In this document: piece by piece, positions 5,676 through 64,000 of the stretch
Position numbering within the stretch: the stretch's first letter is position 1
How the letters are laid out: each line of letters begins with the position of its first letter
Assembly: GCA_047495785.1 (NCBI GenBank)
Contig: JBLDXI010000064.1
Coordinates: 868,001 to 932,000, forward strand
Source: Lepidodermella squamata
Lineage: Eukaryota; Animalia; Gastrotricha
Length of the DNA: 64,000 bases
Direction: 5' to 3'
Translations under genes and position numbers: made by a program
The notes under the pieces: generated by a model
What the model was told of the DNA's origin: nothing
Seen by the model: the letters and a program-made list of their open reading frames with translations, nothing else
The model's database searches: none

Positions 5676-5854
5676 TTACTACATACATGCGAAGTGCTGG
5701 CATGGGTGCGTAGTATTGGCTATGTGTAGTAAAAGCACACACATACACACATACACATATGTGCCAATACTACAACTACGATATATGGAATGTGCGCAGA
5801 TAAGGCTAATACACACACACACATATTACGCATGCGTACGCACACATGTGTAGT
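5676..5854. repeat. CA/TG-rich low-complexity patch with nested inverted repeats (possible degenerate MITE)
   Basis: GTAGTATTGGC (5710-5720) / GCCAATACTAC (5763-5773) perfect 11-bp IR; TTACTACA (5676) / TGTAGTAA (5725-5732); ACTACA.../...TGTAGT at the outer ends; (CA)n/(CATA)n runs. Confidence 0.4.
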
Positions 5855-6121
5855 GCGATATACGATATCGCAGCGAGTCTGCTTTTACGAGGCCATAATG
5901 CATGCCGCCGTATCGAGAGCAGTCGCAGTCGCAGCTGCTTATCAATAGGCGAGTCTTCTTAAAACAGAGCAAACTCTATTCAGTTGAAGCGATTTCAATA
6001 AAACAGTAACAAGGTTACGCCATCACAATCATCAGCCTGCTTTAGCCGGACATCACATCGCATAAATAGCGGGTGAAATACACTTCTCGCAAGATCATAT
6101 TCAATCACTACTACTAGAAAA

Positions 6122-35200: not shown

Positions 35201-38200
35201 TGCCACTATCAAATGAAGCAAGAATATGCGTGATTTGCCTGGGTACAGCACGATTCCGCATAGCTGCGATGCGTACAAGGGTTGAAAACAGCGTTCCAGC
35301 CTGTTTTGGCTGGCAGCGAAATATCGGTCATCCGAAATGTTAGCGAATCGCCTGCAAACGAGTTTCCCCGTGTTGCCACTATCAAATGAAGCAAGAATAT
35401 GCGTGATTTGCCTGGGTTCAGCACGATTCCGCATAGCTGCGATGCGTACAAGGGTTGAAAACAGCGTTACAGCCTGTTTTGGCTGGCAGCGAAATATCGG
35501 TCATCCGAAATGTTAGCAAATCGCCTGCAAACGAGTTTCCCCGTGTTGCCACTATCAAATGAAGCAAGAATATGCGTGATTTGCCTGGGTTCAGCACGAT
35601 TCCGCATAGCTGCGATGCGTACAAGGGTTGAAAACAGCGTTCCAGCCTGTTTTGGCTGGCAGCGAAATATCGGTCATCCGAAATGTTAGCGAATCGCCTG
35701 CAAACGTGTTTGCCCGTGTTGCCACTATCAAATGAAGCAAGAATATGCGTGAATTGCCTGGGTTCAGCACGATTCCGCATAGCTGCGATGCGTACAAGGG
35801 TTGAAAACAGCGTTCCAGCCTGTTTTGGCTGGCAGCGAAATATCGGTCATCCGAAATGTTAGCAAATCGCCTGCAAACGAGTTTGCCCGTGTTGCCACTA
35901 TCAAATGAAGCAAGAATATGCGTGATTTGCCTGGGTACAGCACGATTCCGCATAGCTGCGATGCGTACAAGGGTTGAAAACAGCGTTACAGCCTGTTTTG
36001 GCTGGCAGCGAAATATCGGTCATCCGAAATGTTAGCGAATCGCCTGCAAACGAGTTTCCCCGTGTTGCCACTATCAAATGAAGCAAGAATATGCGTGATT
36101 TGCCTGGGTTCAGCACGATTCCGCATAGCTGCGATGCGTACAAGGGTTGAAAACAGCGTTCCAGCCTGTTTTGGCTGGCAGCGAAATATCGGTCATCCGA
36201 AATGTTAGCGAATCGCCTGCAAACGAGTTTGCCCGTGTTGCCACTATCAAATGAAGCAAGAATATGCGTGATTTGCCTGGGTTCAGCACGATTCCGCATA
36301 GCTGCGATGCGTACAAGGGTTGAAAACAGCGTTCCAGCCTGTTTTGGCTGGCAGCGAAATATCGGTCATCCGAAATGTTAGCAAATCGCCTGCAAACGAG
36401 TTTGCCCGTGTTGCCACTATCAAATGAAGCAAGAATATGCGTGATTTGCCTGGGTTCAGCACGATTCCGCATAGCTGCGATGCGTACAAGGGTTGAAAAC
36501 AGCGTTCCAGCCTGTTTTGGCTGGCAGCGAAATATCGGTCATCTGAAATGTTAACGAATCGCCTGCAAACGAGTTTGCCCGTGTTGCCACTATCAAATGA
36601 AGCAAGAATATGCGTGAATTGCCTGGGTACAGCACGATTCCGCATAGCTGCGATGCGTACAAGGGTTGAAAACAGCGTTCCAGCCTGTTTTGGCTGGCAG
36701 CGAAATATCGGTCATCCGAAATGTTAGCGAATCGCCTGCAAACGTGTTTGCCCGTGTTGCCACTATCAAATGAAGCAAGAATATGCGTGATTTGCCTGGG
36801 TTCAGCACGATTCCGCATAGCTGCGATGCGTACAAGGGTTTGAAACAGCGTTACAGCCTGTTTTGGCTGGCAGCGAAATATCGGTCATCCGAAATGTTAG
36901 CAAATCGCCTGCAAACGAGTTTGCCCGTGTTGCCACTATCAAATGAAGCAAGAATATGCGTGATTTGCCTGGGTACAGCACGATTCCGCATAGCTGCGAT
37001 GCGTACAAGGGTTGAAAACAGCGTTACAGCCTGTTTTGGCTGGCAGCGAAATATCGGTCATCCGAAATATTAGCGAATCGCCTGCAAACGAGTTTCCCCG
37101 TGTTGCCACTATCAAATGAAGCAAGAATATGCGTGATTTGCCTGGGTTCAGCACGATTCCGCATAGCTGCGATGCGTACAAGGGTTGAAAACAGCGTTCC
37201 AGCCTGTTTTGGCTGGCAGCGAAATATCGGTCATCCGAAATGTTAGCGAATCGCCTGCAAACGAGTTTCCCCGTGTTGCCACTATCAAATGAAGCAAGAA
37301 TATGCGTGATTTGCCTGGGTTCAGCACGATTCCGCATAGCTGCGATGCGTACAAGGGTTGAAAACAGCGTTCCAGCCTGTTTTGGCTGGCAGCGAAATAT
37401 CGGTCATCCGAAATGTTAACGAATCGCCTGCAAACGAGTTTGCCCGTGTTGCCACTATCAAATGAAGCAAGAATATGCGTGAATTGCCTGGGTTCAGCAC
37501 GATTCCGCATAGCTGCGATGCGTACAAGGGTTGAAAACAGCGTTCCAGCCTGTTTTGGCTGGCAGCGAAATATCGGTCATCCGAAATGTTAGCGAATCGC
37601 CTGCAAACGAGTTTGCCCGTGTTGCCACTATCAAATGAAGCAAGAATATGCGTGATTTGCCTGGGTACAGCACGATTCCGTATAGCTGCGATGCGTACAA
37701 GGGTTGAAAACAGCGTTACAGCCTGTTTTGGCTGGCAGCGAAATATCGGTCATCCGAAATGTTAGCGAATCGCCTGCAAACGAGTTTCCCCGTGTTGCCA
37801 CTATCAAATGAAGCAAGAATATGCGTGATTTGCCTGGGTTCAGCACGATTCCGCAAAGCTGCGATGCGTACAAGGGTTGAAAATAGCGTTCCAGCCTGTT
37901 TTGGCTGGCAGCGAAATATCGGTCATCCGAAATGTTAGCGAATCGCCTGCAAACGAGTTTCCCCGTGTTGCCACTATCAAATGAAGCAAGAATATGCGTG
38001 ATTTGCCTGGGTTCAGCACGATTCCGCAAAGCTGCGATGCGTACAAGGGTTGAAAATAGCGTTCCAGCCTGTTTTGGCTGGCAGCGAAATATCGGTCATC
38101 CGAAATGTTAGCGAATCGCCTGCAAACGTGTTTGCCCGTGTTGCCACTATCAAATGAAGCAAGAATATGCGTGATTTATCTGGGTTCAGCACGATTCCGT

Positions 38201-41200
38201 ATAGCTGCGATGCGTACAAGGGTTGAAAACAGCGTTACAGCCTGTTTTGGCTGGCAGCGAAATATCGGTCATCCGAAATGTTAGCGAATCGCCTGCAAAC
38301 GTGTTTGCCCGTGTTGCCACTATCAAATGAAGCAAGAATATACGTGATTTATCTGGGTTCAGCACGATTCCGTATAGCTGCGATGCGTACAAGGGTTGAA
38401 AACAGCGTTACAGCCTGTTTTGGCTGGCAGCGAAATATCGGTCATCTGAAATGTTAACGAATCGCCTGCAAACGAGTTTGCCCGTGTTGCCACTATCAAA
38501 TGAAGCAAGAATATGCGTGAATTGCCTGGGTACAGCACGATTCCGCATAGCTGCGATGCGTACAAGGGTTGAAAACAGCGTTCCAGCCTGTTTTGGCTGG
38601 CAGCGAAATATCGGTCATCCGAAATATTAGCGAATCGCCTGCAAACGTGTTTGCCCGTGTTGCCACTATCAAATGAAGCAAGAATATGCGTGATTTGCCT
38701 GGGTTCAGCACGATTCCGCATAGCTGCGATGCGTAAAAGGGTTTGAAACAGCGTTACAGCCTGTTTTGGCTGGCAGCGAAATATCGGTCATCCGAAATGT
38801 TAGCAAATCGCCTGCAAACGAGTTTGCCCGTGTTGCCACTATCAAATGAAGCAAGAATATGCGTGATTTGCCTGGGTACAGCACGATTCCGCATAGCTGC
38901 GATGCGTACAAGGGTTGAAAACAGCGTTACAGCCTGTTTTGGCTGGCAGTGAAATATCGGTCATCCGAAATATTAGCGAATCGCCTGCAAACGAGTTTCC
39001 CCGTGTTGCCACTATCAAATGAAGCAAGAATATGCGTGATTTGCCTGGGTTCAGCACGATTCCGCATAGCTGCGATGCGTACAAGGGTTGAAAACAGCGT
39101 TCCAGCCTGTTTTGGCTGGCAGCGAAATATCGGTCATCCGAAATGTTAGCGAATCGCCTGCAAACGAGTTTCCCCGTGTTGCCACTATCAAATGAAGCAA
39201 GAATATGCGTGATTTGCCTGGGTTCAGCACGATTCCGCATAGCTGCGATGCGTACAAGGGTTGAAAACAGCGTTCCAGCCTGTTTTGGCTGGCAGCGAAA
39301 TATCGGTCATCCGAAATGTTAACGAATCGCCTGCAAACGAGTTTGCCCGTGTTGCCACTATCAAATGAAGCGAGAATATGCGTGAATTGCCTGGGTTCAG
39401 CACGATTCCGCATAGCTGCGATGCGTACAAGGGTTGAAAACAGCGTTCCAGCCTGTTTTGGCTGGCAGCGAAATATCGGTCATCCGAAATGTTAGCGAAT
39501 CGCCTGCAAACGAGTTTGCCCGTGTTGCCACTATCAAATGAAGCAAGAATATGCGTGATTTGCCTGGGTTCAGCACGATTCCGCATAGCTGCGATGCGTA
39601 CAAGGGTTGAAAACAGCGTTCCAGCCTGTTTTGGCTGGCAGCGAAATATCGGTCATCCGAAATGTTAGCGAATCGCCTGCAAACGTGTTTGCCCGTGTTG
39701 CCACTATCAAATGAAGCAAGAATATGCGTGATTTATCTGGGTTCAGCACGATTCCGTATAGCTGCGATGCGTACAAGGGTTGAAAACAGCGTTACAGCCT
39801 GTTTTGGCTGGCAGCGAAATATCGGTCATCCGAAATGTTAGCGAATCGCCTGCAAACGAGTTTCCCCGTGTTGCCACTATCAAATGAAGCAAGAATATGC
39901 GTGATTTGCCTGGGTTCAGCACGATTCCGCATAGCTGCGATGCGTACAAGGGTTGAAAACAGCGTTCCAGCCTGTTTTGGCTGGCAGCGAAATATCGGTC
40001 ATCCGAAATGTTAGCGAATCGCCTGCAAACGTGTTTGCCCGTGTTGCCACTATCAAATGAAGCAAGAATATGCGTGATTTATCTGGGTTCAGCACGATTC
40101 CGTATAGCTGCGATGCGTACAAGGGTTGAAAACAGCGTTACAGCCTGTTTTGGCTGGCAGCGAAATATCGGTCATCCGAAATGTTAGCGAATCGCCTGCA
40201 AACGAGTTTCCCCGTGTTGCCACTATCAAATGAAGCAAGAATATGCGTGATTTGCCTGGGTTCAGCACGATTCCGCATAGCTGCGATGCGTACAAGGGTT
40301 GAAAACAGCGTTCCAGCCTGTTTTGGCTGGCAGCGAAATATCGGTCATCCGAAATGTTAGCGAATCGCCTGCAAACGTGTTTGCCCGTGTTGCCACTATC
40401 AAATGAAGCAAGAATATGCGTGATTTATCTGGGTTCAGCACGATTCCGTATAGCTGCGATGCGTACAAGGGTTGAAAACAGCGTTACAGCCTGTTTTGGC
40501 TGGCAGCGAAATATCGGTCATCCGAAATGTTAGCGAATCGCCTGCAAACGTGTTTGCCCGTGTTGCCACTATCAAATGAAGCAAGAATATGCGTGATTTG
40601 CCTGGGTACAGCACGATTCCGCATAGCTGCGATGCGTACAAGGGTTGAAAACAGCGTTCCAGCCTGTTTTGGCTGGCAGCGAAATATCGGTCATCCGAAA
40701 TGTTAGCGAATCGCCTGCAAACGTGTTTGCCCGTGTTGCCACTATCAAATGAAGCAAGAATATGCGTGATTTGCCTGGGTTCAGCACGATTCCGCATAGC
40801 TGCGATGCGTACAAGGGTTGGAAACAGCGTTACAGCCTGTTTTGGCTGGCAGCGAAATATCGGTCATCCGAAATGTTAGCGAATCGCCTGCAAACGAGTT
40901 TGCCCGTGTTGCCACGATCAAATGAAGCAAGAATATGCGTGATTTGCCTGGGTTCAGCACGATTCCGCATAGCTGCGATGCGTACAAGGGTTGGAAACAG
41001 CGTTACAGCCTGTTTTGGCTGGCAGCGTAATATCGGTCATCCGAAATGTTGCGAATCGCCTGCAAACGAGTTTGCCCGTGTTGCCACTATCAAATGAAGC
41101 AAGAATATGCGTGATTTCCCTGGGTTCAGCACGATTCCGCATAGCTGCGATGCGTACAAGGGTTGAAAACAACGTTCCAGCCTGTTTTGGCTAGCAGCGA

Positions 41201-44200
41201 AATATCGGTCATCCGAAATGTTAGCGAATCGCCTGCAAACGAGTTTCCCCGTGTTGCCACTATCAAATGAAGCAAGAATATGCGTGATTTGCCTGGGTTC
41301 AGCACGATTCCGCATAGCTGCGATGCGTACAAGGGTTGAAAACAGCGTTCCAGCCTGTTTTGGCTGGCAGCGAAATATCGGTCATCCGAAATGTTAGCGA
41401 ATCGCCTGCAAACGTGTTTGCCCGTGTTGCCACTATCAAATGAAGCAAGAATATGCGTGATTTATCTGGGTTCAGCACGATTCCGTATAGCTGCGATGCG
41501 TACAAGGGTTGAAAACAGCGTTACAGCCTGTTTTGGCTGGCAGCGAAATATCGGTCATCCGAAATGTTAGCGAATCGCCTGCAAACGAGTTTCCCCGTGT
41601 TGCCACTATCAAATGAAGCAAGAATATGCGTGATTTGCCTGGGTTCAGCACGATTCCGCATAGCTGCGATGCGTACAAGGGTTGAAAACAGCGTTCCAGC
41701 CTGTTTTGGCTGGCAGCGAAATATCGGTCATCCGAAATGTTAGCGAATCGCCTGCAAACGTGTTTGCCCGTGTTGCCACTATCAAATGAAGCAAGAATAT
41801 ACGTGATTTATCTGGGTTCAGCACGATTCCGTATAGCTGCGATGCGTACAAGGGTTGAAAACAGCGTTACAGCCTGTTTTGGCTGGCAGCGAAATATCGG
41901 TCATCTGAAATGTTAACGAATCGCCTGCAAACGAGTTTGCCCGTGTTGCCACTATCAAATGAAGCAAGAATATGCGTGAATTGCCTGGGTACAGCACGAT
42001 TCCGCATAGCTGCGATGCGTACAAGGGTTGAAAACAGCGTTCCAGCCTGTTTTGGCTGGCAGCGAAATATCGGTCATCCGAAATATTAGCGAATCGCCTG
42101 CAAACGTGTTTGCCCGTGTTGCCACTATCAAATGAAGCAAGAATATGCGTGATTTGCCTGGGTTCAGCACGATTCCGCATAGCTGCGATGCGTAAAAGGG
42201 TTTGAAACAGCGTTACAGCCTGTTTTGGCTGGCAGCGAAATATCGGTCATCCGAAATGTTAGCAAATCGCCTGCAAACGAGTTTGCCCGTGTTGCCACTA
42301 TCAAATGAAGCAAGAATATGCGTGATTTGCCTGGGTACAGCACGATTCCGCATAGCTGCGATGCGTACAAGGGTTGAAAACAGCGTTACAGCCTGTTTTG
42401 GCTGGCAGCGAAATATCGGTCATCCGAAATATTAGCGAATCGCCTGCAAACGAGTTTCCCCGTGTTGCCACTATCAAATGAAGCAAGAATATGCGTGATT
42501 TGCCTGGGTTCAGCACGATTCCGCATAGCTGCGATGCGTACAAGGGTTGAAAACAGCGTTCCAGCCTGTTTTGGCTGGCAGCGAAATATCGGTCATCCGA
42601 AATGTTAGCGAATCGCCTGCAAACGAGTTTGCCCGTGTTGCCACTATCAAATGAAGCAAGAATATGCGTGATTTGCCTGGGTTCAGCACGATTCCGCATA
42701 GCTGCGATGCGTACAAGGGTTGAAAACAGCGTTCCAGCCTGTTTTGGCTGGCAGCGAAATATCGGTCATCCGAAATGTTAACGAATCGCCTGCAAACGAG
42801 TTTGCCCGTGTTGCCACTATCAAATGAAGCAAGAATATGCGTGAATTGCCTGGGTTCAGCACGATTCCGCATAGCTGCGATGCGTACAAGGGTTGAAAAC
42901 AGCGTTCCAGCCTGTTTTGGCTGGCAGCGAAATATCGGTCATCCGAAATGTTAGCGAATCGCCTGCAAACGAGTTTGCCCGTGTTGCCACTATCAAATGA
43001 AGCAAGAATATGCGTGATTTGCCTGGGTTCAGCACGATTCCGCATAGCTGCGATGCGTACAAGGGTTGAAAACAGCGTTCCAGCCTGTTTTGGCTGGCAG
43101 CGAAATATCGGTCATCCGAAATGTTAGCGAATCGCCTGCAAACGTGTTTGCCCGTGTTGCCACTATCAAATGAAGCAAGAATATGCGTGATTTATCTGGG
43201 TTCAGCACGATTCCGTATAGCTGCGATGCGTACAAGGGTTGAAAACAGCGTTACAGCCTGTTTTGGCTGGCAGCGAAATATCGGTCATCCGAAATGTTAG
43301 CGAATCGCCTGCAAACGAGTTTCCCCGTGTTGCCACTATCAAATGAAGCAAGAATATGCGTGATTTGCCTGGGTTCAGCACGATTCCGCATAGCTGCGAG
43401 GCGTACAAGGGTTGAAAACAGCGTTCCAGCCTGTTTTGGCTGGCAGCGAAATATCGGTCATCCGAAATGTTAGCGAATCGCCTGCAAACGAGTTTGCCCG
43501 TGTTGCCACTATCAAATGAAGCAAGAATATGCGTGATTTGCCTGGGTTCAGCACGATTCCGCATAGCTGCGATGCGTACAAGGGTTGAAAACAGCGTTCC
43601 AGCCTGTTTTGGCTGGCAGCGAAATATCGGTCATCCGAAATGTTAACGAATCGCCTGCAAACGAGTTTGCCCGTGTTGCCACTATCAAATGAAGCAAGAA
43701 TATGCGTGAATTGCCTGGGTTCAGCACGATTCCGCATAGCTGCGATGCGTACAAGGGTTGAAAACAGCGTTCCAGCCTGTTTTGGCTGGCAGCGAAATAT
43801 CGGTCATCCGAAATGTTAGCGAATCGCCTGCAAACGAGTTTGCCCGTGTTGCCACTATCAAATGAAGCAAGAATATGCGTGATTTATCTGGGTTCAGCAC
43901 GATTCCGTATAGCTGCGATGCGTACAAGGGTTGAAAACAGCGTTACAGCCTGTTTTGGCTGGCAGCGAAATATCGGTCATCCGAAATGTTAGCGAATCGC
44001 CTGCAAACGTGTTTGCCCGTGTTGCCACTATCAAATGAAGCAAGAATATGCGTGATTTGCCTGGGTACAGCACGATTCCGCATAGCTGCGATGCGTACAA
44101 GGGTTGAAAACAGCGTTCCAGCCTGTTTTGGCTGGCAGCGAAATATCGGTCATCCGAAATGTTAGCGAATCGCCTGCAAACGTGTTTGCCCGTGTTGCCA

Positions 44201-47200
44201 CTATCAAATGAAGCAAGAATATGCGTGATTTGCCTGGGTTCAGCACGATTCCGCATAGCTGCGATGCGTACAAGGGTTGGAAACAGCGTTACAGCCTGTT
44301 TTGGCTGGCAGCGAAATATCGGTCATCCGAAATGTTAGCGAATCGCCTGCAAACGAGTTTGCCCGTGTTGCCACGATCAAATGAAGCAAGAATATGCGTG
44401 ATTTGCCTGGGTTCAGCACGATTCCGCATAGCTGCGATGCGTACAAGGGTTGGAAACAGCGTTACAGCCTGTTTTGGCTGGCAGCGAAATATCGGTCATC
44501 CGAAATATTAGCGAATCGCCTGCAAACGAGTTTCCCCGTGTTGCCACTATCAAATGAAGCAAGAATATGCGTGATTTGCCTGGGTTCAGCACGATTCCGC
44601 ATAGCTGCGAGGCGTACAAGGGTTGAAAACAGCGTTCCAGCCTGTTTTGGCTGGCAGCGAAATATCGGTCATCCGAAATGTTAGCGAATCGCCTGCAAAC
44701 GTGTTTGCCCGTGTTGCCACTATCAAATGAAGCAAGAATATGCGTGATTTATCTGGGTTCAGCACGATTCCGTATAGCTGCGATGCGTACAAGGGTTGAA
44801 AACAGCGTTACAGCCTGTTTTGGCTGGCAGCGAAATATCGGTCATCCGAAATGTTAGCGAATCGCCTGCAAACGAGTTTCCCCGTGTTGCCACTATCAAA
44901 TGAAGCAAGAATATGCGTGATTTGCCTGGGTTCAGCACGATTCCGCATAGCTGCGATGCGTACAAGGGTTGAAAACAGCGTTCCAGCCTGTTTTGGCTGG
45001 CAGCGAAATATCGGTCATCCGAAATGTTAGCGAATCGCCTGCAAACGAGTTTGCCCGTGTTGCCACGATCAAATGAAGCAAGAATATGCGTGATTTGCCT
45101 GGGTACAGCACGATTCCGCATAGCTGCGATGCGTACAAGGGTTGAAAACAGCGTTACAGCCTGTTTTGGCTGGCAGCGAAATATCGGTCATCCGAAATAT
45201 TAGCGAATCGCCTGCAAACGAGTTTCCCCGTGTTGCCACTATCAAATGAAGCAAGAATATGCGTGATTTGCCTGGGTTCAGCACGATTCCGCATAGCTGC
45301 GATGCGTACAAGGGTTGAAAACAGCGTTCCAGCCTGTTTTGGCTGGCAGCGAAATATCGGTCATCCGAAATGTTAGCGAATCGCCTGCAAACGAGTTTGC
45401 CCGTGTTGCCACTATCAAATGAAGCAAGAATATGCGTGATTTGCCTGGGTTCAGCACGATTCCGCATAGCTGCGATGCGTACAAGGGTTGAAAACAGCGT
45501 TCCAGCCTGTTTTGGCTGGCAGCGAAATATCGGTCATCCGAAATGTTAACGAATCGCCTGCAAACGAGTTTGCCCGTGTTGCCACTATCAAATGAAGCAA
45601 GAATATGCGTGAATTGCCTGGGTTCAGCACGATTCCGCATAGCTGCGATGCGTACAAGGGTTGAAAACAGCGTTCCAGCCTGTTTTGGCTGGCAGCGAAA
45701 TATCGGTCATCCGAAATGTTAGCGAATCGCCTGCAAACGAGTTTGCCCGTGTTGCCACTATCAAATGAAGCAAGAATATGCGTGATTTGCCTGGGTTCAG
45801 CACGATTCCGCATAGCTGCGATGCGTACAAGGGTTGAAAACAGCGTTCCAGCCTGTTTTGGCTGGCAGCGAAATATCGGTCATCCGAAATGTTAGCGAAT
45901 CGCCTGCAAACGTGTTTGCCCGTGTTGCCACTATCAAATGAAGCAAGAATATGCGTGATTTATCTGGGTTCAGCACGATTCCGTATAGCTGCGATGCGTA
46001 CAAGGGTTGAAAACAGCGTTACAGCCTGTTTTGGCTGGCAGCGAAATATCGGTCATCCGAAATGTTAGCGAATCGCCTGCAAACGAGTTTCCCCGTGTTG
46101 CCACTATCAAATGAAGCAAGAATATGCGTGATTTGCCTGGGTTCAGCACGATTCCGCATAGCTGCGAGGCGTACAAGGGTTGAAAACAGCGTTCCAGCCT
46201 GTTTTGGCTGGCAGCGAAATATCGGTCATCCGAAATGTTAGCGAATCGCCTGCAAACGTGTTTGCCCGTGTTGCCACTATCAAATGAAGCAAGAATATGC
46301 GTGATTTATCTGGGTTCAGCACGATTCCGTATAGCTGCGATGCGTACAAGGGTTGAAAACAGCGTTACAGCCTGTTTTGGCTGGCAGCGAAATATCGGTC
46401 ATCCGAAATGTTAGCGAATCGCCTGCAAACGAGTTTCCCCGTGTTGCCACTATCAAATGAAGCAAGAATATGCGTGATTTGCCTGGGTTCAGCACGATTC
46501 CGCATAGCTGCGATGCGTACAAGGGTTGAAAACAGCGTTCCAGCCTGTTTTGGCTGGCAGCGAAATATCGGTCATCCGAAATGTTAGCGAATCGCCTGCA
46601 AACGTGTTTGCCCGTGTTGCCACTATCAAATGAAGCAAGAATATGCGTGATTTGCCTGGGTTCAGCACGATTCCGCATAGCTGCGATGCGTACAAGGGTT
46701 GGAAACAGCGTTACAGCCTGTTTTGGCTGGCAGCGAAATATCGGTCATCCGAAATGTTAGCGAATCGCCTGCAAACGAGTTTGCCCGTGTTGCCACGATC
46801 AAATGAAGCAAGAATATGCGTGATTTGCCTGGGTTCAGCACGATTCCGCATAGCTGCGATGCGTACAAGGGTTGGAAACAGCGTTACAGCCTGTTTTGGC
46901 TGGCAGCGTAATATCGGTCATCCGAAATGTTGCGAATCGCCTGCAAACGAGTTTGCCCGTGTTGCCACTATCAAATGAAGCAAGAATATGCGTGATTTCC
47001 CTGGGTTCAGCACGATTCCGCATAGCTGCGATGCGTACAAGGGTTGAAAACAACGTTCCAGCCTGTTTTGGCTAGCAGCGAAATATCGGTCATCCGAAAT
47101 GTTAGCGAATCGCCTGCAAACGAGTTTCCCCGTGTTGCCACTATCAAATGAAGCAAGAATATGCGTGATTTGCCTGGGTTCAGCACGATTCCGCATAGCT

Positions 47201-50818: not shown

Positions 50819-53800
50819 ACGCATATTCTTGCTTCATTTGATAGTGGCAACACGGTCAAACTCGTTTGCAGGCGATTCGCAACATTTCGGATGACCGATA
50901 TTTCGCTGCCAGCCAAAACAGGCTGGAACGCTGTTTTCAACCCTTGTACGCATCGCAGCTATGCGGAATCGTGCTGTACCCAGGCAATTCACGCATATTC
51001 TTGCTTCATTTGATAGTGGCAACACGGGCAAACACGTTTGCAGGCGATTCGCTAACATTTCGGATGACCGATATTTCGCTGCCAGCCAAAACAGGCTGGA
51101 ACGCTGTTTTCAACCCTTGTACGCATCGCAGCTATGCGGAATCGTGCTGTACCCAGGCAATTCACGCATATTCTTGCTTCATTTGATAGTGGCAACACGG
51201 GCAAACACGTTTGCAGGCGATTCGCTAACATTTCGGATGACCGATATTTCGCTGCCAGCCAAAACAGGCTGAAACGCTGTTTTCAACCCTTGTACGCATC
51301 GCAGCTATGCGGAATCGTGCTGAACCCAGGCAAATCACGCATATTCTTGCTTCATTTGATAGTGGCAACACGGGGAAACTCGTTTGCAGGCGATTTGCTA
51401 ACATTTCGGATGACCGATATTTCGCTGCCAGCCAAAACAGGCTGGAACGCTGTTTTCAACCCTTGTACGCATCGCAGCTATGCGAATCGTGCTGACACCA
51501 GGCAAATCACTCATATTCTTGCTTCATTTGATAGTGGCAACACGAGCAAACTCGTTTGCAGGCGATTCGCTAACATTTCGGATGACCGATATTTCGCTGC
51601 CAGCCAAAACAGGCTGGAACGCTGTTTTCAACCCTTGTACGCATCGCAGCTATGCGGAATCGTGCTGAACCCAGGCAAATCACGCATATTCTTGCTTCAT
51701 TTGATAGTGGCAACACGGTCAAACTCGTTTGCAGGCGATCGCAACATTTCGGATGACCGATATTTCGCTGCCAGCCAAAACAGGCTGGAACGCTGTTTTC
51801 AACCCTTGTACGCATCGCAGCTATGCGGAATCGTGCTGTACCCAGGCAATTCACGCATATTCTTGCTTCATTTGATAGTGGCAACACGGTCAAACTCGTT
51901 TGCAGGCGATTCGCAACATTTCGGATGACCGATATTTCGCTGCCAGCCAAAACAGGCTGGAACGCTGTTTTCAACCCTTGTACGCATCGCAGCTATGCGT
52001 AATCGTGCTGAACCCAGGCAAATCACGCATATTCTTGCTTCATTTGATAGTGGCAACACGGTCAAACTCGTTTGCAGGCGATTCGCAACATTTCGGATGA
52101 CCGATATTTCGCTGCCAGCCAAAACAGGCTGGAACGCTGTTTTCAACCCTTGTACGCATCGCAGCTATGCGGAATCGTGCTGTACCCAGGCAATTCACGC
52201 ATATTCTTGCTTCATTTGATAGTGGCAACACGGGCAAACACGTTTGCAGGCGATTCGCTAACATTTCGGATGACCGATATTTCGCTGCCAGCCAAAACAG
52301 GCTGGAACGCTGTTTTCAACCCTTGTACGCATCGCAGCTATGCGGAATCGTGCTGTACCCAGGCAATTCACGCATATTCTTGCTTCATTGATAGTGGCAA
52401 CACGGGCAAACACGTTTGCAGGCGATTCGCTAACATTTCGGATGACCGATATTTCGCTGCCAGCCAAAACAGGCTGGAACGCTGTTTTCAACCCTTGTAC
52501 GCATCGCAGCTATGCGGAATCGTGCTGAACCCAGGCAAATCACGCATATTCTTGCTTCATTTGATAGTGGCAACACGGTTCAAACTCGTTTGCAGGCGAT
52601 TCGCAACATTTCGGATGACCGATATTTCGCTGCCAGCCAAAACAGGCTGGAACGCTGTTTTCAACCCTTGTACGCATCGCAGCTATGCGGAATCGTGCTG
52701 TACCCAGGCAATTCACGCATATTCTTGCTTCATTTGATAGTGGCAACACGGGCAAACACGTTTGCAGGCGATTCGCTAACATTTCGGATGACCGATATTT
52801 CGCTGCCCAGCCAAAACAGGCTGTAACGCTGTTTTCAACCCTTGTACGCATCGCAGCTATACGGAATCGTGCTGAACCCAGGCAAATCACGCATATTCTT
52901 GCTTCATTTGATAGTGGCAACACGGGGAAACTCGTTTGCAGGCGATTTGCTAACATTTCGGATGACCGATATTTCGCTGCCAGCCAAAACAGGCTGAAAC
53001 GCTGTTTTCAACCCTTGTACGCATCGCAGCTATGCGGAATCGTGCTGAACCCAGGCAAATCACGCATATTCTTGCTTCATTTGATAGTGGCAACACGGGG
53101 AAACTCGTTTGCAGGCGATTTGCTAACATTTCGGATGACCGATATTTCGCTGCCAGCCAAAACAGGCTGGAACGCTGTTTTCAACCCTTGTACGCATCGC
53201 AGCTATGCGGAATCGTGCTGTACCCAGGCAATTCACGCATATTCTTGCTTCATTTGATAGTGCAACACGGGCAAACTCGTTTGCAGGCGATTTGCTAACA
53301 TTTCGGATGACCGATATTTCGCTGCCAGCCAAAACAGGCTGGAACTCTGTTTTCAACCCTTGTACGCATCGCAGCTATGCGGAATCGTGCTGAACCCAGG
53401 CAAATCACGCATATTCTTGCTTCATTTGATAGTGGCAACACGGGCAAACTCGTTTGCAGGCGATTCGTTAACATTTCGGATGACCGATATTTCGCTGCAG
53501 CCAAACAAACTGGAACGCTGTTTTCAACCCTTGTACGCATCGCAGCTATGCGGAATCGTGCTGAACCCAGGCAAATCACGCATATTCTTGCTTCATTTGA
53601 TAGTGGCAACACGGGCAAACTCGTTTGCAGGCGATTCGCTAACATTTCGGATGACCGATATTTCGCTGCCAGCCAAAACAGGCTGGAACGCTGTTTTCAA
53701 CCCTTGTACGCATCGCAGCTATGCGGAATCGTGCTGTACCCAGGCAATTCACGCATATTCTTGCTTCATTTGATAGTGGCAACACGGGGAAACTCGTTTG

Positions 53801-56800
53801 CAGGCGATTCGCTAACATTTCGGATGACCGATATTTCGCTGCCAGCCAAAACAGGCTGGAACGTTGTTTTCAACCCTTGTACGCATCGCAGCTATGCGGA
53901 ATCGTGCTGAACCCAGGGAAATCACGCATATTCTTGCTTCATTTGATAGTGGCAACACGGGCAAACTCGTTTGCAGGCGATTCGCAACATTTCGGATGAC
54001 CGATATTACGCTGCCAGCCAAAACAGGCTGTAACGCTGTTTCCAACCCTTGTACGCATCGCAGCTATGCGGAATCGTGCTGAACCCAGGCAAATCACGCA
54101 TATTCTTGCTTCATTTGATAGTGGCAACACGGGGAAACACGTTTGCAGGCGATTCGCTAACATTTCGGATGACCGATATTTCGCTGCCAGCCAAAACAGG
54201 CTGGAACGTTGTTTTCAACCCTTGTACGCATCGCAGCTATGCGGAATCGTGCTGAACCCCAGGGAAATCACGCATATTCTTGCTTCATTTGATAGTGGCA
54301 ACACGGGCAAACTCGTTTGCAGGCGATTCGCAACATTTCGGATGACCGATATTACGCTGCCAGCCAAAACAGGCTGGAACGTTGTTTTCAACCCTTGTAC
54401 GCATCGCAGCTATGCGGATCGTGCTGAACCCAGGCAAATCACGCATATTCTTGCTTCATTTGATAGTGGCAACACGGGGAAACTCGTTTTGCAGGCGATT
54501 CGCTAACATTTCGGATGACCGATATTTCGCTGCTAGCCAAAACAGGCTGGAACGTTGTTTTCAACCCTTGTACGCATCGCAGCTATGCGGAATCGTGCTG
54601 AACCCAGGGAAATCACGCATATTCTTGCTTCATTTGATAGTGGCAACACGGGCAAACTCGTTTGCAGGCGATTCGCAACATTTCGGATGACCGATATTAC
54701 GCTGCCAGCCAAAACAGGCTGTAACGCTGTTTCCAACCCTTGTACGCATCGCAGCTATGCGGAATCGTGCTGAACCCAGGCAAATCACGCATATTCTTGC
54801 TTCATTTGATCGTGGCAACACGGGCAAACTCGTTTGCAGGCGATTCGCTAACATTTCGGATGACCGATATTTCGCTGCCAGCCAAAACAGGCTGTAACGC
54901 TGTTTCCAACCCTTGTACGCATCGCAGCTATGCGGAATCGTGCTGAACCCAGGCAAATCACGCATATTCTTGCTTCATTTGATAGTGGCAACACGGGCAA
55001 ACACGTTTGCAGGCGATTCGCTAACATTTCGGATGACCGATATTTCGCTGCCAGCCAAAACAGGCTGGAACGCTGTTTTCAACCCTTGTACGCATCGCAG
55101 CTATGCGGAATCGTGCTGAACCCAGGCAAATCACGCATATTCTTGCTTCATTTGATAGTGGCAACACGGGGAAACTCGTTTGCAGGCGATTCGCTAACAT
55201 TTCGGATGACCGATATTTCGCTGCCAGCCAAAACAGGCTGTAACGCTGTTTTCAACCCCTTGTACGCATCGCAGCTATACGGAATCGTGCTGAACCCAGA
55301 TAAATCACGCATATTCTTGCTTCATTTGATAGTGGCAACACGGGCAAACACGTTTGCAGGCGATTCGCTAACATTTCGGATGACCGATATTTCGCTGCCA
55401 GCCAAAACAGGCTGGAACGCTGTTTTCAACCCTTGTACGCCTCGCAGCTATGCGGAATCGTGCTGAACCCAGGCAAATCACGCATATTCTTGCTTCATTT
55501 GATAGTGGCAACACGGGGAAACTCGTTTGCAGGCGATTCGCTAACATTTCGGATGACCGATATTTCGCTGCCAGCCAAAACAGGCTGTAACGCTGTTTTC
55601 AACCCTTGTACGCATCGCAGCTATACGGAATCGTGCTGAACCCAGATAAATCACGCATATTCTTGCTTCATTTGATAGTGGCAACACGGGCAAACACGTT
55701 TGCAGGCGATTCGCTAACATTTCGGATGACCGATATTTCGCTGCCAGCCAAAAACAGGCTGGAACGCTGTTTTCAACCCTTGTACGCATCGCAGCTATGC
55801 GGAATCGTGCTGAACCCAGGCAAATCACGCATATTCTTGCTTCATTTGATAGTGGCAACACGGGCAAACTCGTTTGCAGGCGATTCGCTAACATTTCGGA
55901 TGACCGATATTTCGCTGCCAGCCAAAACAGGCTGGAACGCTGTTTTCAACCCTTGTACGCATCGCAGCTATGCGGAATCGTGCTGAACCCAGGCAATTCA
56001 CGCATATTCTTGCTTCATTTGATAGTGGCAACACGGGCAAACTCGTTTGCAGGCGATTCGTTAACATTTCGGATGACCGATATTTCGCTGCCAGCCAAAA
56101 CAGGCTGGAACGCTGTTTTCAACCCTTGTACGCATCGCAGCTATGCGGAATCGTGCTGAACCCAGGCAAATCACGCATATTCTTGCTTCATTTGATAGTG
56201 GCAACACGGGCAAACTCGTTTGCAGGCGATTCGCTAACATTTCGGATGACCGATATTTCGCTGCCAGCCAAAACAGGCTGGAACGCTGTTTTCAACCCTT
56301 GTACGCATCGCAGCTATGCGGAATCGTGCTGAACCCAGGCAAATCACGCATATTCTTGCTTCATTTGATAGTGGCAACACGGGGAAACTCGTTTGCAGGC
56401 GATTCGCTAATATTTCGGATGACCGATATTTCGCTGCCAGCCAAAACAGGCTGTAACGCTGTTTTCAACCCTTGTACGCATCGCAGCTATGCGGAATCGT
56501 GCTGTACCCAGGCAAATCACGCATATTCTTGCTTCATTTGATCGTGGACAACACGGGCAAACTCGTTTGCAGGCGATTCGCTAACATTTCGGATGACCGA
56601 TATTTCGCTGCCAGCCAAAACAGGCTGGAACGCTGTTTTCAACCCTTGTACGCATCGCAGCTATGCGGAATCGTGCTGAACCCAGGCAAATCACGCATAT
56701 TCTTGCTTCATTTGATAGTGGCAACACGGGGAAACTCGTTTGCAGGCGATTCGCTAACATTTCGGATGACCGATATTTCGCTGCCAGCCAAAACAGGCTG

Positions 56801-59800
56801 TAACGCTGTTTTCAACCCTTGTACGCATCGCAGCTATACGGAATCGTGCTGAACCCAGATAAATCACGCATATTCTTGCTTCATTTGATAGTGGCAACAC
56901 GGGCAAACACGTTTGCAGGCGATTCGCTAACATTTCGGATGACCGATATTTCGCTGCCAGCCAAAACAGGCTGGAACGCTGTTTTCAACCCCTTGTACGC
57001 CTCGCAGCTATGCGGAATCGTGCTGAACCCAGGCAAATCACGCATATTCTTGCTTCATTTGATAGTGGCAACACGGGGAAACTCGTTTGCAGGCGATTCG
57101 CTAATATTTCGGATGACCGATATTTCGCTGCCAGCCAAAACAGGCTGTAACGCTGTTTCCAACCCTTGTACGCATCGCAGCTATGCGGAATCGTGCTGAA
57201 CCCAGGCAAATCACGCATATTCTTGCTTCATTTGATCGTGGCAACACGGGCAAACTCGTTTGCAGGCGATTCGCTAACATTTCGGATGACCGATATTTCG
57301 CTGCCAGCCAAAACAGGCTGTAACGCTGTTTCCAACCCTTGTACGCATCGCAGCTATGCGGAATCGTGCTGAACCCAGGCAAATCACGCATATTCTTGCT
57401 TCATTTGATAGTGGCAACACGGGCAAAACACGTTTGCAGGCGATTCGCTAACATTTCGGATGACCGATATTTCGCTGCCAGCCAAAACAGGCTGGAACGC
57501 TGTTTTCAACCCTTGTACGCATCGCAGCTATGCGGAATCGTGCTGTACCCAGGCAAATCACGCATATTCTTGCTTCATTTGATAGTGGCAACACGGGCAA
57601 ACACGTTTGCAGGCGATTCGCTAACATTTCGGATGACCGATATTTCGCTGCCAGCCAAAACAGGCTGTAACGCTGTTTTCAACCCTTGTACGCATCGCAG
57701 CTATACGGAATCGTGCTGAACCCAGATAAATCACGCATATTCTTGCTTCATTTGATAGTGGCAACACGGGCAAACTCGTTTGCAGGCGATTCGCTAACAT
57801 TTCGGATGACCGATATTTCGCTGCAGCCAAAACAGGCTGGAACGCTGTTTTCAACCCTTGTACGCATCGCAGCTATGCGGAATCGTGCTGAACCCAGGCA
57901 ATTCACGCATATTCTTGCTTCATTTGATAGTGGCAACACGGGCAAACTCGTTTGCAGGCGATTCGTTAACATTTCGGATGACCGATATTTCGCTGCCAGC
58001 CAAAACAGGCTGGAACGCTGTTTTCAACCCTTGTACGCATCGCAGCTATGCGGAATCGTGCTGAACCCAGGCAAATCACGCATATTCTTGCTTCATTTGA
58101 TAGTGGCAACACGGGCAAACTCGTTTGCAGGCGATTCGCTAACATTTCGGATGACCGATATTTCGCTGCCAGCCAAAACAGGCTGGAACGCTGTTTTCAA
58201 CCCTTGTACGCCTCGCAGCTATGCGGAATCGTGCTGAACCCAGGCAAATCACGCATATTCTTGCTTCATTTGATAGTGGCAACACGGGGAAACTCGTTTG
58301 CAGGCGATTCGCTAACATTTCGGATGACCGATATTTCGCTGCCAGCCAAAACAGGCTGTAACGCTGTTTTCAACCCTTGTACGCATCGCAGCTATACGGA
58401 ATCGTGCTGAACCCAGATAAATCACGCATATTCTTGCTTCATTTGATAGTGGCAACACGGGCAAACACGTTTGCAGGCGATTCGCTAACATTTCGGATGA
58501 CCGATATTTCGCTGCCAGCCAAAACAGGCTGGAACGCTGTTTTCAACCCTTGTACGCATCGCAGCTATGCGGAATCGTGCTGAACCCAGGCAAATCACGC
58601 ATATTCTTGCTTCATTTGATAGTGGCAACACGGGCAAACTCGTTTGCAGGCGATTCGCTAACATTTCGGATGACCGATATTTCGCTGCCAGCCAAAACAG
58701 GCTGGAAACGCTGTTTTCAACCTTGTACGCATCGCAGCTATGCGGAATCGTGCTGAACCCAGGCAATTCACGCATATTCTTGCTTCATTTGATAGTGGCA
58801 ACACGGGCAAACTCGTTTGCAGGCGATTCGTTAACATTTCGGATGACCGATATTTCGCTGCCAGCCAAAACAGGCTGGAACGCTGTTTTCAACCCTTGTA
58901 CGCATCGCAGCTATGCGGAATCGTGCTGAACCCAGGCAAATCACGCATATTCTTGCTTCATTTGATAGTGGCAACACGGGCAAACTCGTTTGCAGGCGAT
59001 TCGCTAACATTTCGGATGACCGATATTTCGCTGCCAGCCAAAACAGGCTGGAACGCTGTTTTCAACCCTTGTACGCATCGCAGCTATGCGGAATCGTGCT
59101 GAACCCAGGCAAATCACGCATATTCTTGCTTCATTTGATAGTGGCAACACGGGGAAACTCGTTTGCAGGCGATTCGCTAATATTTCGGATGACCGATATT
59201 TCGCTGCCAGCCAAAACAGGCTGTAACGCTGTTTTCAACCCTTGTACGCATCGCAGCTATGCGGAATCGTGCTGTACCCAGGCAAATCACGCATATTCTT
59301 GCTTCATTTGATAGTGGCAACACGGGCAAACTCGTTTGCAGGCGATTTGCTAACATTTCGGATGACGATATTTCGCTGCCAGCCAAAACAGGCTGTAACG
59401 CTGTTTCAAACCCTTTTACGCATCGCAGCTATGCGGAATCGTGCTGAACCCAGGCAAATCACGCATATTCTTGCTTCATTTGATAGTGGCAACACGGGCA
59501 AACACGTTTGCAGGCGATTCGCTAATATTTCGGATGACCGATATTTCGCTGCCAGCCAAAACAGGCTGGAACGCTGTTTTCAACCCTTGTACGCATCGCA
59601 GCTATGCGGAATCGTGCTGTACCCAGACAATTCACGCATATTCTTGCTTCATTTGATAGTGGCAACACGGGCAAACTCGTTTGCAGGCGATTCGTTAACA
59701 TTTCAGATGACCGATATTTCGCTGCCAGCCAAAACAGGCTGTAACGCTGTTTCAACCCTTGTACGCATCGCAGCTATACGGAATCGTGCTGAACCCAGAT

Positions 59801-62800
59801 AAATCACGTATATTCTTGCTTCATTTGATAGTGGCAACACGGGCAAACACGTTTGCAGGCGATTCGCTAACATTTCGGATGACCGATATTTCGCTGCCAG
59901 CCAAAACAGGCTGGAACGCTGTTTTCAACCTTGTACGCATCGCAGCTATGCGGAATCGTGCTGAACCCAGGCAAATCACGCATATTCTTGCTTCATTTGA
60001 TAGTGGCAACACGGGGAAACTCGTTTGCAGGCGATTCGCTAACATTTCGGATGACCGATATTTCGCTGCCAGCCAAAACAGGCTGTAACGCTGTTTTCAA
60101 CCCTTGTACGCATCGCAGCTATACGGAATCGTGCTGAACCCAGATAAATCACGCATATTCTTGCTTCATTTGATAGTGGCAACACGGGCAAACACGTTTG
60201 CAGGCGATTCGCTAACATTTCGGATGACCGATATTTCGCTGCCAGCCAAAACAGGCTGGAACGCTGTTTTCAACCCTTGTACGCATCGCAGCTATGCGGA
60301 ATCGTGCTGAACCCAGGCAAATCACGCATATTCTTGCTTCATTTGATAGTGGCAACACGGGGAAACTCGTTTGCAGGCGATTCGCTAACATTTCGGATGA
60401 CCGATATTTCGCTGCTAGCCAAAACAGGCTGGAACGTTGTTTTCAACCCTTGTACGCATCGCAGCTATGCGGAATCGTGCTGAACCCAGGAAATCACGCA
60501 TATTCTTGCTTCATTTGATAGTGGCAACACGGGCAAACTCGTTTGCAGGCGATTCGCAACATTTCGGATGACCGATATTACGCTGCCAGCCAAAACAGGC
60601 TGTAACGCTGTTTCCAACCCTTGTACGCATCGCAGCTATGCGGAATCGTGCTGAACCCAGGCAAATCACGCATATTCTTGCTTCATTTGATCGTGGCAAC
60701 ACGGGCAAACTCGTTTGCAGGCGATTCGCTAACATTTCGGATGACCGATATTTCGCTGCCAGCCAAAACAGGCTGTAACGCTGTTTCCAACCCTTGTACG
60801 CATCGCAGCTATGCGGAATCGTGCTGAACCCAGGCAAATCACGCATATTCTTGCTTCATTTGATAGTGGCAACACGGGCAAACACGTTTGCAGGCGATTC
60901 GCTAACATTTCGGATGACCGATATTTCGCTGCCAGCCAAAACAGGCTGGAACGCTGTTTTCAACCCTTGTACGCATCGCAGCTATGCGGAATCGTGCTGT
61001 ACCAGGCAAATCACGCATATTCTTGCTTCATTTGATAGTGGCAACACGGGCAAACACGTTTGCAGGCGATTCGCTAACATTTCGGATGACCGATATTTCG
61101 CTGCCAGCCAAAACAGGCTGTAACGCTGTTTTCAACCCTTGTACGCATCGCAGCTATACGGAATCGTGCTGAACCCAGATAAATCACGCATATTCTTGCT
61201 TCATTTGATAGTGGCAACACGGGCAAACACGTTTGCAGGCGATTCGCTAACATTTCGGATGACCGATATTTCGCTGCCAGCCAAAACAGGCTGGAACGCT
61301 GTTTTCAACCCTTGTACGCATCGCAGCTATGCGGAATCGTGCTGAACCCAGGCAAATCACGCATATTCTTGCTTCATTTGATAGTGGCAACACGGGGAAA
61401 CTCGTTTGCAGGCGATTCGCTAACATTTCGGATGACCGATATTTCGCTGCCAGCCAAACAGGCTGTAACGCTGTTTTCAACCCTTGTACGCATCGCAGCT
61501 ATACGGAATCGTGCTGAACCCAGATAAATCACGCATATTCTTGCTTCATTTGATAGTGGCAACACGGGCAAACACGTTTGCAGGCGATTCGCTAACATTT
61601 CGGATGACCGATATTTCGCTGCCAGCCAAAACAGGCTGGAACGCTGTTTTCAACCCTTGTACGCATCGCAGCTATGCGGAATCGTGCTGAACCCAGGCAA
61701 ATCACGCATATTCTTGCTTCATTTGATAGTGGCAACACGGGGAAACTCGTTTGCAGGCGATTCGCTAACATTTCGGATGACCGATATTTCGCTGCCAGCC
61801 AAAACAGGCTGTAACGCTGTTTTCAACCCTTGTACGCATCGCAGCTATACGGAATCGTGCTGAACCCAGATAAATCACGCATATTCTTGCTTCATTTGAT
61901 AGTGGCAACACGGGCAAACACGTTTGCAGGCGATTCGCTAACATTTCGGATGACCGATATTTCGCTGCCAGCCAAAACAGGCTGGAACGCTGTTTTCAAC
62001 CCTTGTACGCATCGCAGCTATGCGGAATCGTGCTGAACCAGGCAAATCACGCATATTCTTGCTTCATTTGATAGTGGCAACACGGGCAAACTCGTTTGCA
62101 GGCGATTCGCTAACATTTCGGATGACCGATATTTCGCTGCCAGCCAAAACAGGCTGGAACGCTGTTTTCAACCCTTGTACGCATCGCAGCTATGCGGAAT
62201 CGTGCTGAACCCAGGCAATTCACGCATATTCTCGCTTCATTTGATAGTGGCAACACGGGCAAACTCGTTTGCAGGCGATTCGTTAACATTTCGGATGACC
62301 GATATTTCGCTGCCAGCCAAAACAGGCTGGAACGCTGTTTTCAACCCTTGTACGCATCGCAGCTATGCGGAATCGTGCTGAACCCAGGCAAATCACGCAT
62401 ATTCTTGCTTCATTTGATAGTGGCAACACGGGGAAACTCGTTTGCAGGCGATTCGCTAACATTTCGGATGACCGATATTTCGCTGCCAGCCAAAACAGGC
62501 TGGAACGCTGTTTTCAACCCTTGTACGCATCGCAGCTATGCGGAATCGTGCTGAACCCAGGCAAATCACGCATATTCTTGCTTCATTTGATAGTGGCAAC
62601 ACGGGGAAACTCGTTTGCAGGCGATTCGCTAATATTTCGGATGACCGATATTTCACTGCCAGCCAAAAACAGGCTGTAACGCTGTTTTCAACCCTTGTAC
62701 GCATCGCAGCTATGCGGAATCGTGCTGTACCCAGGCAAATCACGCATATTCTTGCTTCATTTGATAGTGGCAACACGGGCAAACTCGTTTGCAGGCGATT

Positions 62801-64000
62801 TGCTAACATTTCGGATGACCGATATTTCGCTGCCAGCCAAAACAGGCTGTAACGCTGTTTCAAACCCTTTTACGCATCGCAGCTATGCGGAATCGTGCTG
62901 AACCCAGGCAAATCACGCATATTCTTGCTTCATTTGATAGTGGCAACACGGGCAAACACGTTTGCAGGCGATTCGCTAATATTTCGGATGACCGATATTT
63001 CGCTGCCAGCCAAAACAGGCTGGAACGCTGTTTTCAACCCTTGTACGCATCGCAGCTATGCGGAATCGTGCTGTACCCAGGCAATTCACGCATATTCTTG
63101 CTTCATTTGATAAGTGGCAACACGGGCAAACTCGTTTGCAGGCGATTCGTTAACATTTCAGATGACCGATATTTCGCTGCCAGCCAAAACAGGCTGTAAC
63201 GCTGTTTTCAACCCTTGTACGCATCGCAGCTATACGGAATCGTGCTGAACCCAGATAAATCACGTATATTCTTGCTTCATTTGATAGTGGCAACACGGGC
63301 AAACACGTTTGCAGGCGATTCGCTAACATTTCGGATGACCGATATTTCGCTGCCAGCCAAAACAGGCTGTAACGCTGTTTTCAACCCTTGTACGCATCGC
63401 AGCTATACGGAATCGTGCTGAACCCAGATAAATCACGCATATTCTTGCTTCATTTGATAGTGGCAACACGGGCAAACACGTTTGCAGGCGATTCGCTAAC
63501 ATTTCGGATGACCGATATTTCGCTGCCAGCCAAAACAGGCTGGAACGCTATTTTCAACCCTTGTACGCATCGCAGCTTTGCGGAATCGTGCTGAACCCAG
63601 GCAAATCACGCATATTCTTGCTTCATTTGATAGTGGCAACACGGGGAAACTCGTTTGCAGGCGATTCGCTAACATTTCGGATGACCGATATTTCGCTGCC
63701 AGCCAAAACAGGCTGGAACGCTATTTTCAACCCTTGTACGCATCGCAGCTTTGCGGAATCGTGCTGAACCCAGGCAAATCACGCATATTCTTGCTTCATT
63801 TGATAGTGGCAACACGGGGAAACTCGTTTGCAGGCGATTCGCTAACATTTCGGATGACCGATATTTCGCTGCCAGCCAAAACAGGCTGTAACGCTGTTTT
63901 CAACCCTTGTACGCATCGCAGCTATACGGAATCGTGCTGTACCCAGGCAAATCACGCATATTCTTGCTTCATTTGATAGTGGCAACACGGGCAAACTCGT
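50819..64000 (-). repeat. same 173-bp satellite in inverted orientation, ~76 monomers; mirror copy of ~37610-50794
   Basis: Reverse complement of the monomer; rare variants recur at mirror coordinates summing to ~101610. Confidence 0.98.

Follow-up and report, generated by a model that had tools for sequence, protein, structure and literature searches.

An inverted duplication in a 173-bp satellite array of Lepidodermella squamata and its probable origin in a fold-back long read

Several routes lead to fold-back palindromes in chromosomes: guidance by a short inverted repeat, as in Tetrahymena rDNA, hairpin-capped breaks, and the fold-back inversions of breakage-fusion-bridge cycles. Since no copy of the chromosome lacks a palindrome of this kind, many reads cross it and its arms are assembled at equal quality. 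Like such palindromes, the locus described here has a spacer-containing short inverted repeat at its centre, and its arms are identical, as is expected of young palindromes. It differs from them in quality, which is very unequal between the arms and low across the centre.

Palindromic reads, and the inverted duplications that result from them in assemblies, have also been documented, with whole-genome amplification, missed SMRTbell adapters and ONT ligation libraries as sources (PMC6218980, PMC13265396, PMC12870357, bioRxiv 10.64898/2026.06.11.730069). Like the chimeras produced by whole-genome amplification (PMC6218980; PMC13265396; bioRxiv 10.64898/2026.06.11.730069), the present palindrome has arms that represent a single locus on opposite strands and that are identical except for read errors. 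In both, a short inverted repeat marks the switch, and a chimeric node loops the assembly path back. The mean length of HiFi reads reported for MDA libraries is 7–8 kb, whereas the arm found here is longer, at least 13 kb. The locus is also similar to the fold-back reads of the Breakinator paper (PMC12870357), in which one read covers the same place on both strands and little sequence, if any, separates the two segments. In that study fold-back reads amounted to 0.55–0.6% for ONT genomic DNA, and virtually none were present in standard unamplified HiFi data, which would speak against a fold-back read here if the library was of that type. Reads with a missed SMRTbell adapter (PMC6218980) have a palindromic structure as well.

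In the present work a window of 64,000 nucleotides (the whole stretch of DNA that was analysed) was examined. Judging from the sequence, an inverted-chimera long read was likely incorporated at the contig end, and the palindrome probably does not correspond to any structure of the chromosome.

Mirror symmetry of the satellite array

Tandem Repeats Finder detected a 173-bp array in forward orientation at 14202–50825 (211.7 copies) and its reverse complement at 50819–64000 (76.3 copies). The sign of the GC skew flips at ~50.8 kb. An ungapped symmetry scan placed the centre of symmetry at 50806/50807, in agreement with the preliminary description of this DNA, according to which the array folds back at 50806. 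The array and the two arms are as follows.

14202..50794, forward strand: forward 173-bp satellite array, ~212 monomers, 97.5–98.2% identity at every lag
37607..50794, forward strand: left arm of the palindrome, its extent being what the window allows to be matched
50819..64000, reverse strand: right arm, the reverse complement of 37607–50794, in which 28 one-base indels and 3 substitutions are private

The reverse-complemented right arm was compared with the left part by BLAST. The in-register match extends over 37607–50794 at 99.735% identity, with 3 mismatches and 32 gaps, whereas no other register exceeds 97.4%, each having 306–340 mismatches and 37–45 gaps. The claim that the right arm repeats the monomer variants of the left arm in reverse order is thus borne out by the register comparison. 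Since the number of gaps is nearly constant between registers while the number of mismatches changes about a hundredfold, the indels are noise over an identical sequence. In a global alignment the 13.2-kb arms differ by 3 substitutions and by 32 indels of one base each, in keeping with the earlier statement that substitution differences between them are nearly absent.

A comparison of rare-variant k-mers, which the preliminary description had proposed, was carried out with 25-mers unique in the forward array. For 167 of the 278 the right arm contains the reverse complement; the coordinates of the pairs sum to a median of 101609, with a single pair (101955) lying apart. Of the missing ones, about 100 are words created by four errors in the left arm. 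In the control, unique 25-mers from 14202–37606, the corresponding value was 1 of 153. Register comparison and unique 25-mers agree that one locus is represented twice, the second time as its reverse complement, as in fold-back reads. The mirrored part measures at least 26.4 kb and fills the window up to its end at 64000, so that the earlier estimate of at least 26 kb, with an arm running off the window end, also holds. Among the indels of the satellite a single one is a genuine variant, delA at monomer position 169. Of its 10 copies, nine are mirrored in the right arm; the tenth (33267) has its mirror position beyond 64000.

A higher-order repeat was considered as a source of the mirrored variants and rejected, the identity between monomers being flat (97.5–98.2%) over lags of 1–40 monomers. 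The change of array orientation at one point is a feature shared with the ordinary strand switches of centromeric satellites. At those, however, the two sides are independent sets of monomers, whereas here the right side consists of the left-side variants in reverse order, and the flanking arrays are mirror images of each other. A mirror-image duplication of the 173-bp satellite is truly present in the assembled sequence.

Sequence at the turn

The turn is made up of a short inverted repeat and its loop, and the base change that completes the repeat occurs once more in the forward array.

50789..50794, forward strand: ATGCGT, left half of the 6-bp inverted repeat closing the stem
50795..50818, forward strand: asymmetric 24-nt loop of ordinary monomer sequence (positions 60–83), with no adapter or foreign letters
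50819..50824, forward strand: ACGCAT, right half of the 6-bp inverted repeat
49605..49614, forward strand: C>A variant GATTACGCAT, in the only other monomer that has the variant in normal forward context

The first departure from the normal monomer is the A at 50819, where the normal monomer has C. The same variant at 49605..49614 is mirrored at 51995, which shows that the C>A change arises naturally, 7 monomers upstream of the turn. With its 24-nt spacer the 6-bp inverted repeat folds very stably. A short inverted repeat at the switch point, as found here, is a property both of MDA-type template switches and of genuine chromosomal palindromes; real fold-back events are equally expected to turn at such a repeat.

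Searches of the window gave no match to the query sequences used for the SMRTbell adapter (up to 3 mismatches) and for the barcode bc1003 (up to 2 mismatches). In reads with a missed SMRTbell adapter the adapter is expected at the centre, whereas there is none at or near the turn. A read of this type was excluded as the source, the loop being plain monomer sequence. As neither adapter nor foreign sequence is present at the turn, a physical hairpin-like molecule must have existed.

Distribution of errors between the arms

The 32 arm-private indels are all single-base, nearly all of them lie in runs of 2–5 identical bases, and insertions and deletions are roughly balanced. Such a profile, consisting almost only of balanced indels in short runs, is one that we take to be more HiFi-like. 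In the right arm 28 of the 32 are found, evenly spaced at ~2.1 per kb. The remaining four, in the left arm, all fall at 48693–50517, within the final 2.1 kb ahead of the turn. No such indel is present in the earlier 34.4 kb of array (14202–48600; P ~6e-32 at the same rate). The three substitutions between the arms are without exception deviations of the right arm. Leaving out the last 2.1 kb, the same is true of all 24 differences in the mirrored part (binomial 6e-8). On either side of the centre, errors were found within 300–700 nt of it. One region of reduced accuracy can thus be delimited.

48693..64000, no strand assigned: continuous low-accuracy stretch with ~2.1 private indels per kb, which begins 2.1 kb before the turn and spans it

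The confinement of read-type indels to the right arm and the last 2.1 kb of the left arm points to a single uncorrected read across the junction, and the sequence from 48.69 to 64.0 kb appears to be the contribution of one such long read. Errors this close to the centre argue against several spanning reads, because those reads would have corrected them. The right arm is therefore presumably weakly supported by reads. The arms differ only by errors of sequencing type, and the chimeric part has the accuracy of a single read, as expected for a fold-back read.

The same pattern bears on the possibility of a real germline palindrome, in which the satellite array would have undergone inverted duplication by fold-back very recently and been assembled correctly. 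Such a duplication could go back to a hairpin-capped break or a breakage-fusion-bridge cycle, to an isochromosome-type centre, or to guidance by the short inverted repeat. The mirror structure is exact, the turn lies on a very stably folding inverted repeat with its spacer, and the enabling C>A variant is a natural one; all three would be in its favour. Normal coverage, however, predicts that both arms are equally corrected, and that correction works best at the centre because reads can be placed there unambiguously. What is observed is ~2.1 read-type errors per kb in the right arm and at the centre, against none in the mirrored left arm before 48.6 kb, and, judged from sequence quality, the arms and the centre are of unequal consensus quality. 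A germline palindrome is therefore very unlikely. Biased polishing of a real palindrome was rejected as a cause of the asymmetry; it would leave the centre clean, since spanning reads map uniquely there, yet the centre has errors. Of the two readings offered in the preliminary description, the technical chimera is the one favoured by the near restriction of read-type indels to the right arm and the last 2.1 kb, and the real inverted duplication or hairpin end is much the less likely.

A pure software error, in which the contig was joined to its own reverse complement and the turn exists in no read, could account for the near identity of the arms and for their location within a repeat. But overlap joins require long overlaps, for which a 6-bp inverted repeat is too short, and the error-rich stretch starts 2.1 kb before the turn and continues unbroken across it, like one physical read. 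This explanation is hardly credible.

Most likely, then, both the right arm and the turn itself stem from one fold-back (inverted-chimera) long read, with which the assembler lengthened the contig within the satellite array. A strand ending in ...GATTACGCAT may have paired with the ATGCGT located 24 nt upstream in the same monomer, after which synthesis, or the read, would have returned over at least 13 kb of the complementary strand. Such an event probably took place in vitro, during amplification, by template switching in the library, or by snap-back and fill-in. The true chromosome probably goes on past 50.8 kb with forward monomers (...GATTCCGCATAGC...).

Public runs and the nature of the fold-back molecule

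For a 60-mer all of whose 31-mers cross the junction, no public run was listed; 4 words were sampled, and Logan contigs drop rare words. The lack of a listed run for these junction words would also count against a germline palindrome. In X1, the one run listed for the organism and available as contigs, 0.88 of the sampled words from 1–6000 (the nearby genes) are present, and satellite variants are kept at a depth of 4–10. An ABCC exon gave best homologue hits of about 58% identity, scattered across many animal phyla. Over 49900–51720, none of the pieces listed for X1 (8 of 280) spans the turn; the contigs in the satellite are 58–81 nt long, too short to reveal read support there, and rare words are dropped. 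At 51270 one X1 contig suggests an extra G; the site is a substitution variant common to both arms and is uninformative.

X1 does contain another fold-back-type joint of this satellite, distinct from the present one but likewise located at GATT|ACGCAT, at a depth of 8.7. Turns of this kind may recur, and to that extent the joint speaks for a germline palindrome. It also bears on a further possibility, namely that a real but rare molecule was caught in one read and wrongly promoted to consensus. Such a molecule might be a somatic fold-back rearrangement, the intermediate of a hairpin-ended break, or extrachromosomal satellite DNA. It would leave the same single-read signature as a fold-back artefact, the loop is natural sequence free of adapter, and the depth of the X1 joint is low relative to the satellite. 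Nothing, however, distinguishes a rare molecule from an in-vitro origin; in very abundant satellites, template switching in vitro will also recur at whichever inverted repeat is best, and technical fold-backs are well documented. A rare molecule is an unlikely source. That the satellite, a candidate centromeric one, contains a real zero-age palindrome or hairpin-type turn at the ATGCGT/ACGCAT of its monomer is similarly doubtful.

With a fold-back read as the preferred reading, these observations are of value mainly for quality control, in that 15 kb or more at the end of the contig should not be taken as evidence of chromosome structure, centromere architecture or recent duplication. For the triage of giant palindromes where reads are not at hand, the question to be asked is whether one arm, together with a short stretch ahead of the turn, contains all of the private read-type errors. 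Were the structure nevertheless real, the satellite monomer would carry its own fold-back site, and the X1 joint at GATT|ACGCAT would mark a recurrent, sequence-programmed fold-back hotspot in the satellite.

The satellite array and its mirrored end

The sequence to the left of the palindrome carries genes followed by a tandem array.

Features from the left end of the window
93-2552: parts of an ABCC/MRP-type ABC transporter; two long open frames with transmembrane and ATPase domains (Pfam)
7040-7591: DUF1295 open frame (PF06966, E = 1e-19)
14202 to window end: 173-bp satellite array filling the remainder (Tandem Repeats Finder)

In a homologue search, the closest database relatives of the ABCC/MRP protein showed ~58% identity and came from molluscs, insects and other phyla. 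Best relatives this distant, and scattered across so many animal phyla, suggest that the host animal belongs to a poorly sampled lineage. Onset of the array at ~14202 is abrupt, with unique sequence before it (14150-14260 inspected); the first satellite unit is entered at ...TGGCTGGCAGCG, and short degenerate TGTTTTG(G)CT motifs lie just before. Monomer-to-monomer identity was 97.5-98.2% and flat over lags 1 to 40, and therefore no higher-order repeat is present in the satellite over the lags compared.

The preliminary description had proposed a giant palindrome of at least 26 kb, centred near 50806, in which the right arm repeats the variants of the left arm in mirrored order with almost no substitutions between them. 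This structure was confirmed. The sign of GC skew reverses at ~50.8 kb, Tandem Repeats Finder followed the forward array up to 50825 and an inverted array starting at 50819, and a symmetry scan located the centre at 50806/50807. As the arms fill the window to 64000, the palindrome size of 26.4 kb is a lower bound. Comparison of 37607-50794 with the reverse complement of 50819-64000 gave 3 mismatches and 32 gaps in 13.2 kb, against 306-340 mismatches and 37-45 gaps in all other registers. Unique 25-mers of the left arm recurred as reverse complements in 167 of 278 cases (median coordinate sum 101609, one outlier), compared to 1 of 153 control 25-mers from 14202-37606; about 100 of the unmirrored words arise from four left-arm errors.

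Anatomy of the turn

Features at the turn
50789-50794: stem-closing ATGCGT, left half of the inverted repeat
50795-50818: 24-nt loop of plain satellite monomer (monomer positions 60-83)
50819-50824: stem-closing ACGCAT, right half of the inverted repeat

The earliest deviation from the normal monomer falls at 50819, an A in place of the consensus C. This A gives an inverted repeat of 6 bp, and the consensus C would give one of 5 bp; the rare variant thus perfects an inverted repeat intrinsic to the satellite monomer. The same C>A variant is found in a single ordinary forward copy at 49605, seven monomers upstream of the turn, and has its mirror at 51995. The predicted DNA fold of the region is a perfect hairpin (-49.3 kcal/mol, z = -15).

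No match to the SMRTbell adapter, at up to 3 mismatches, or to the bc1003 barcode, at up to 2, was seen across the whole window. Since the loop is also plain monomer, a simple missed adapter was ruled out as the cause of the turn. The turn is a physical fold-back of some molecule. At the junction, ACGCAT would have paired with ATGCGT over the 24-nt loop, after which the complementary strand would have been copied. This pairing mechanism fits a technical event, a rare molecule and a real palindrome alike and does not discriminate among them.

The junction in public sequencing data

Run X1, the only public sequencing run of the organism listed, is available as contigs. It contains 0.88 of the words of the gene region (1-6000), so the organism is represented among the searchable runs. 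A junction 60-mer (50789-50848), in which every 31-mer spans the junction, was listed in none of the public runs; the search sampled 4 words only, and such absence is not proof of none. X1 contigs were also compared with 49900-51720. The satellite contigs were 58-81 nt long, and rare variants were retained, as some contigs had depths down to 4-10; none of the 8 pieces listed, out of 280, spanned the turn. If X1 is the library of the assembly itself, the missing words fit a junction too rare for the contig builder; if it is an independent library, they argue against a germline junction. The test is weak whichever library X1 is.

One X1 contig, at a depth of 8.7, links 50819 to 50949. Its left side, ...CAGCACGATTA, is as at the turn, but it enters the inverted monomer elsewhere than the turn of the window does (CGCATCGCAGCTATGCGG...), in a form absent from the window. 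It represents a second joint of fold-back type with unchanged polarity, made at the monomer's other ATGCG copy (position 97 versus 54). Summed word depth of the satellite reaches 10^5. The joint may be a real fold-back hotspot or a second real turn, and may equally reflect recurrent template switching in a very abundant satellite.

Two further X1 contigs (loose ends at 50004 and 50884) join satellite to non-satellite sequence that the window lacks; in one, 255 letters precede an inverted-orientation monomer. The genome therefore has further array borders at other places, in both orientations.

Differences between the arms and the origin of the palindrome

On moving from a wrong to the right register, substitutions fell from ~310 to 3 (99% removed), while gaps hardly altered (~38 to 32). 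This disparity shows the gaps to be noise over two copies of one sequence. An indel survey, in which each monomer was aligned to the satellite consensus, gave exactly one genuine indel variant, delA at monomer position 169 (TTAGCG to TTGCG), producing a 172-bp monomer.

Forward-array copies of the delA 172-bp monomer
33267, 41051, 46932, 47277, 47622, 49004, 49523, 49695, 49868, 50733

Nine copies have their mirror position within the window, and the right arm carries the variant at each of the nine; that of the tenth (33267) would fall past 64000. Eight of the ten sit within the final 4 kb before the turn, and the character of the array therefore shifts towards 50 kb.

All remaining indels are private to one arm and one base each, nearly all in homopolymer runs of 2-5 bases, with insertions about as frequent as deletions. 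Context counts in the array's clean part placed 22 of them in the right arm, and monomer length and consensus assigned 6 more to it. Four are left-arm deviations, all within 48693-50517. All three substitutions are right-arm departures from consensus. No private indel occurs in 14202-48600 (34.4 kb), whereas from 48693 across the turn to the window end they run even and unbroken at ~2.1 per kb, a rate at which an empty 34.4 kb has a probability of ~6e-32. Within the mirrored part that precedes 48.6 kb, 24 of 24 differences lie in the right arm (binomial 6e-8).

The low-accuracy stretch thus starts 2.1 kb left of the turn and runs across it. Judged by its errors, 48.69-64.0 kb (at least 15.3 kb) is about as accurate as one long read left uncorrected (about Q27), and the profile of nearly absent substitutions and balanced short-run indels looks HiFi-like.

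The preliminary description had left a recent inverted duplication or hairpin end beside a technical chimera, and the private indels favour the chimera, with the thin read evidence leaning likewise. A real chromosomal palindrome is unlikely: at the depth that gave 34 kb of error-free array both arms would be equally clean, and unique read mapping would make the centre the cleanest part, yet private errors lie within 300-700 nt of it on both sides. Polishing of a real palindrome on one arm only, through multi-mapping, likewise predicts a clean centre and was rejected. A genuine molecule of low abundance that was picked up by a single read is improbable.

Whole-genome amplification yields many palindromic reads when a displaced 3′ end pairs with a displaced strand close by, and such reads lead to false inverted duplications in assemblies (PMC6218980; PMC13265396). 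Chimeric reads reach 60-70% with MDA and HiFi, and inverted chimeras show up in assembly graphs as nodes that loop back the wrong way (bioRxiv 10.64898/2026.06.11.730069). Fold-back reads make up 0.55-0.6% of unamplified ONT genomic libraries and are virtually absent from standard HiFi (PMC12870357).

Another sequence window, shifted by +1705, overlaps with this one, and the contig seems to run at least 1.7 kb past 64000. It may end at about that point, ~14.9 kb after the turn.

The palindrome is most likely a technical fold-back read built into the contig end. In the simplest account, this read would be the last in the assembler path; its left part would have overlapped the true array, and the read would then have turned the contig back on itself. 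Presumably the true array goes on forward, and would be placed elsewhere in the assembly or omitted.
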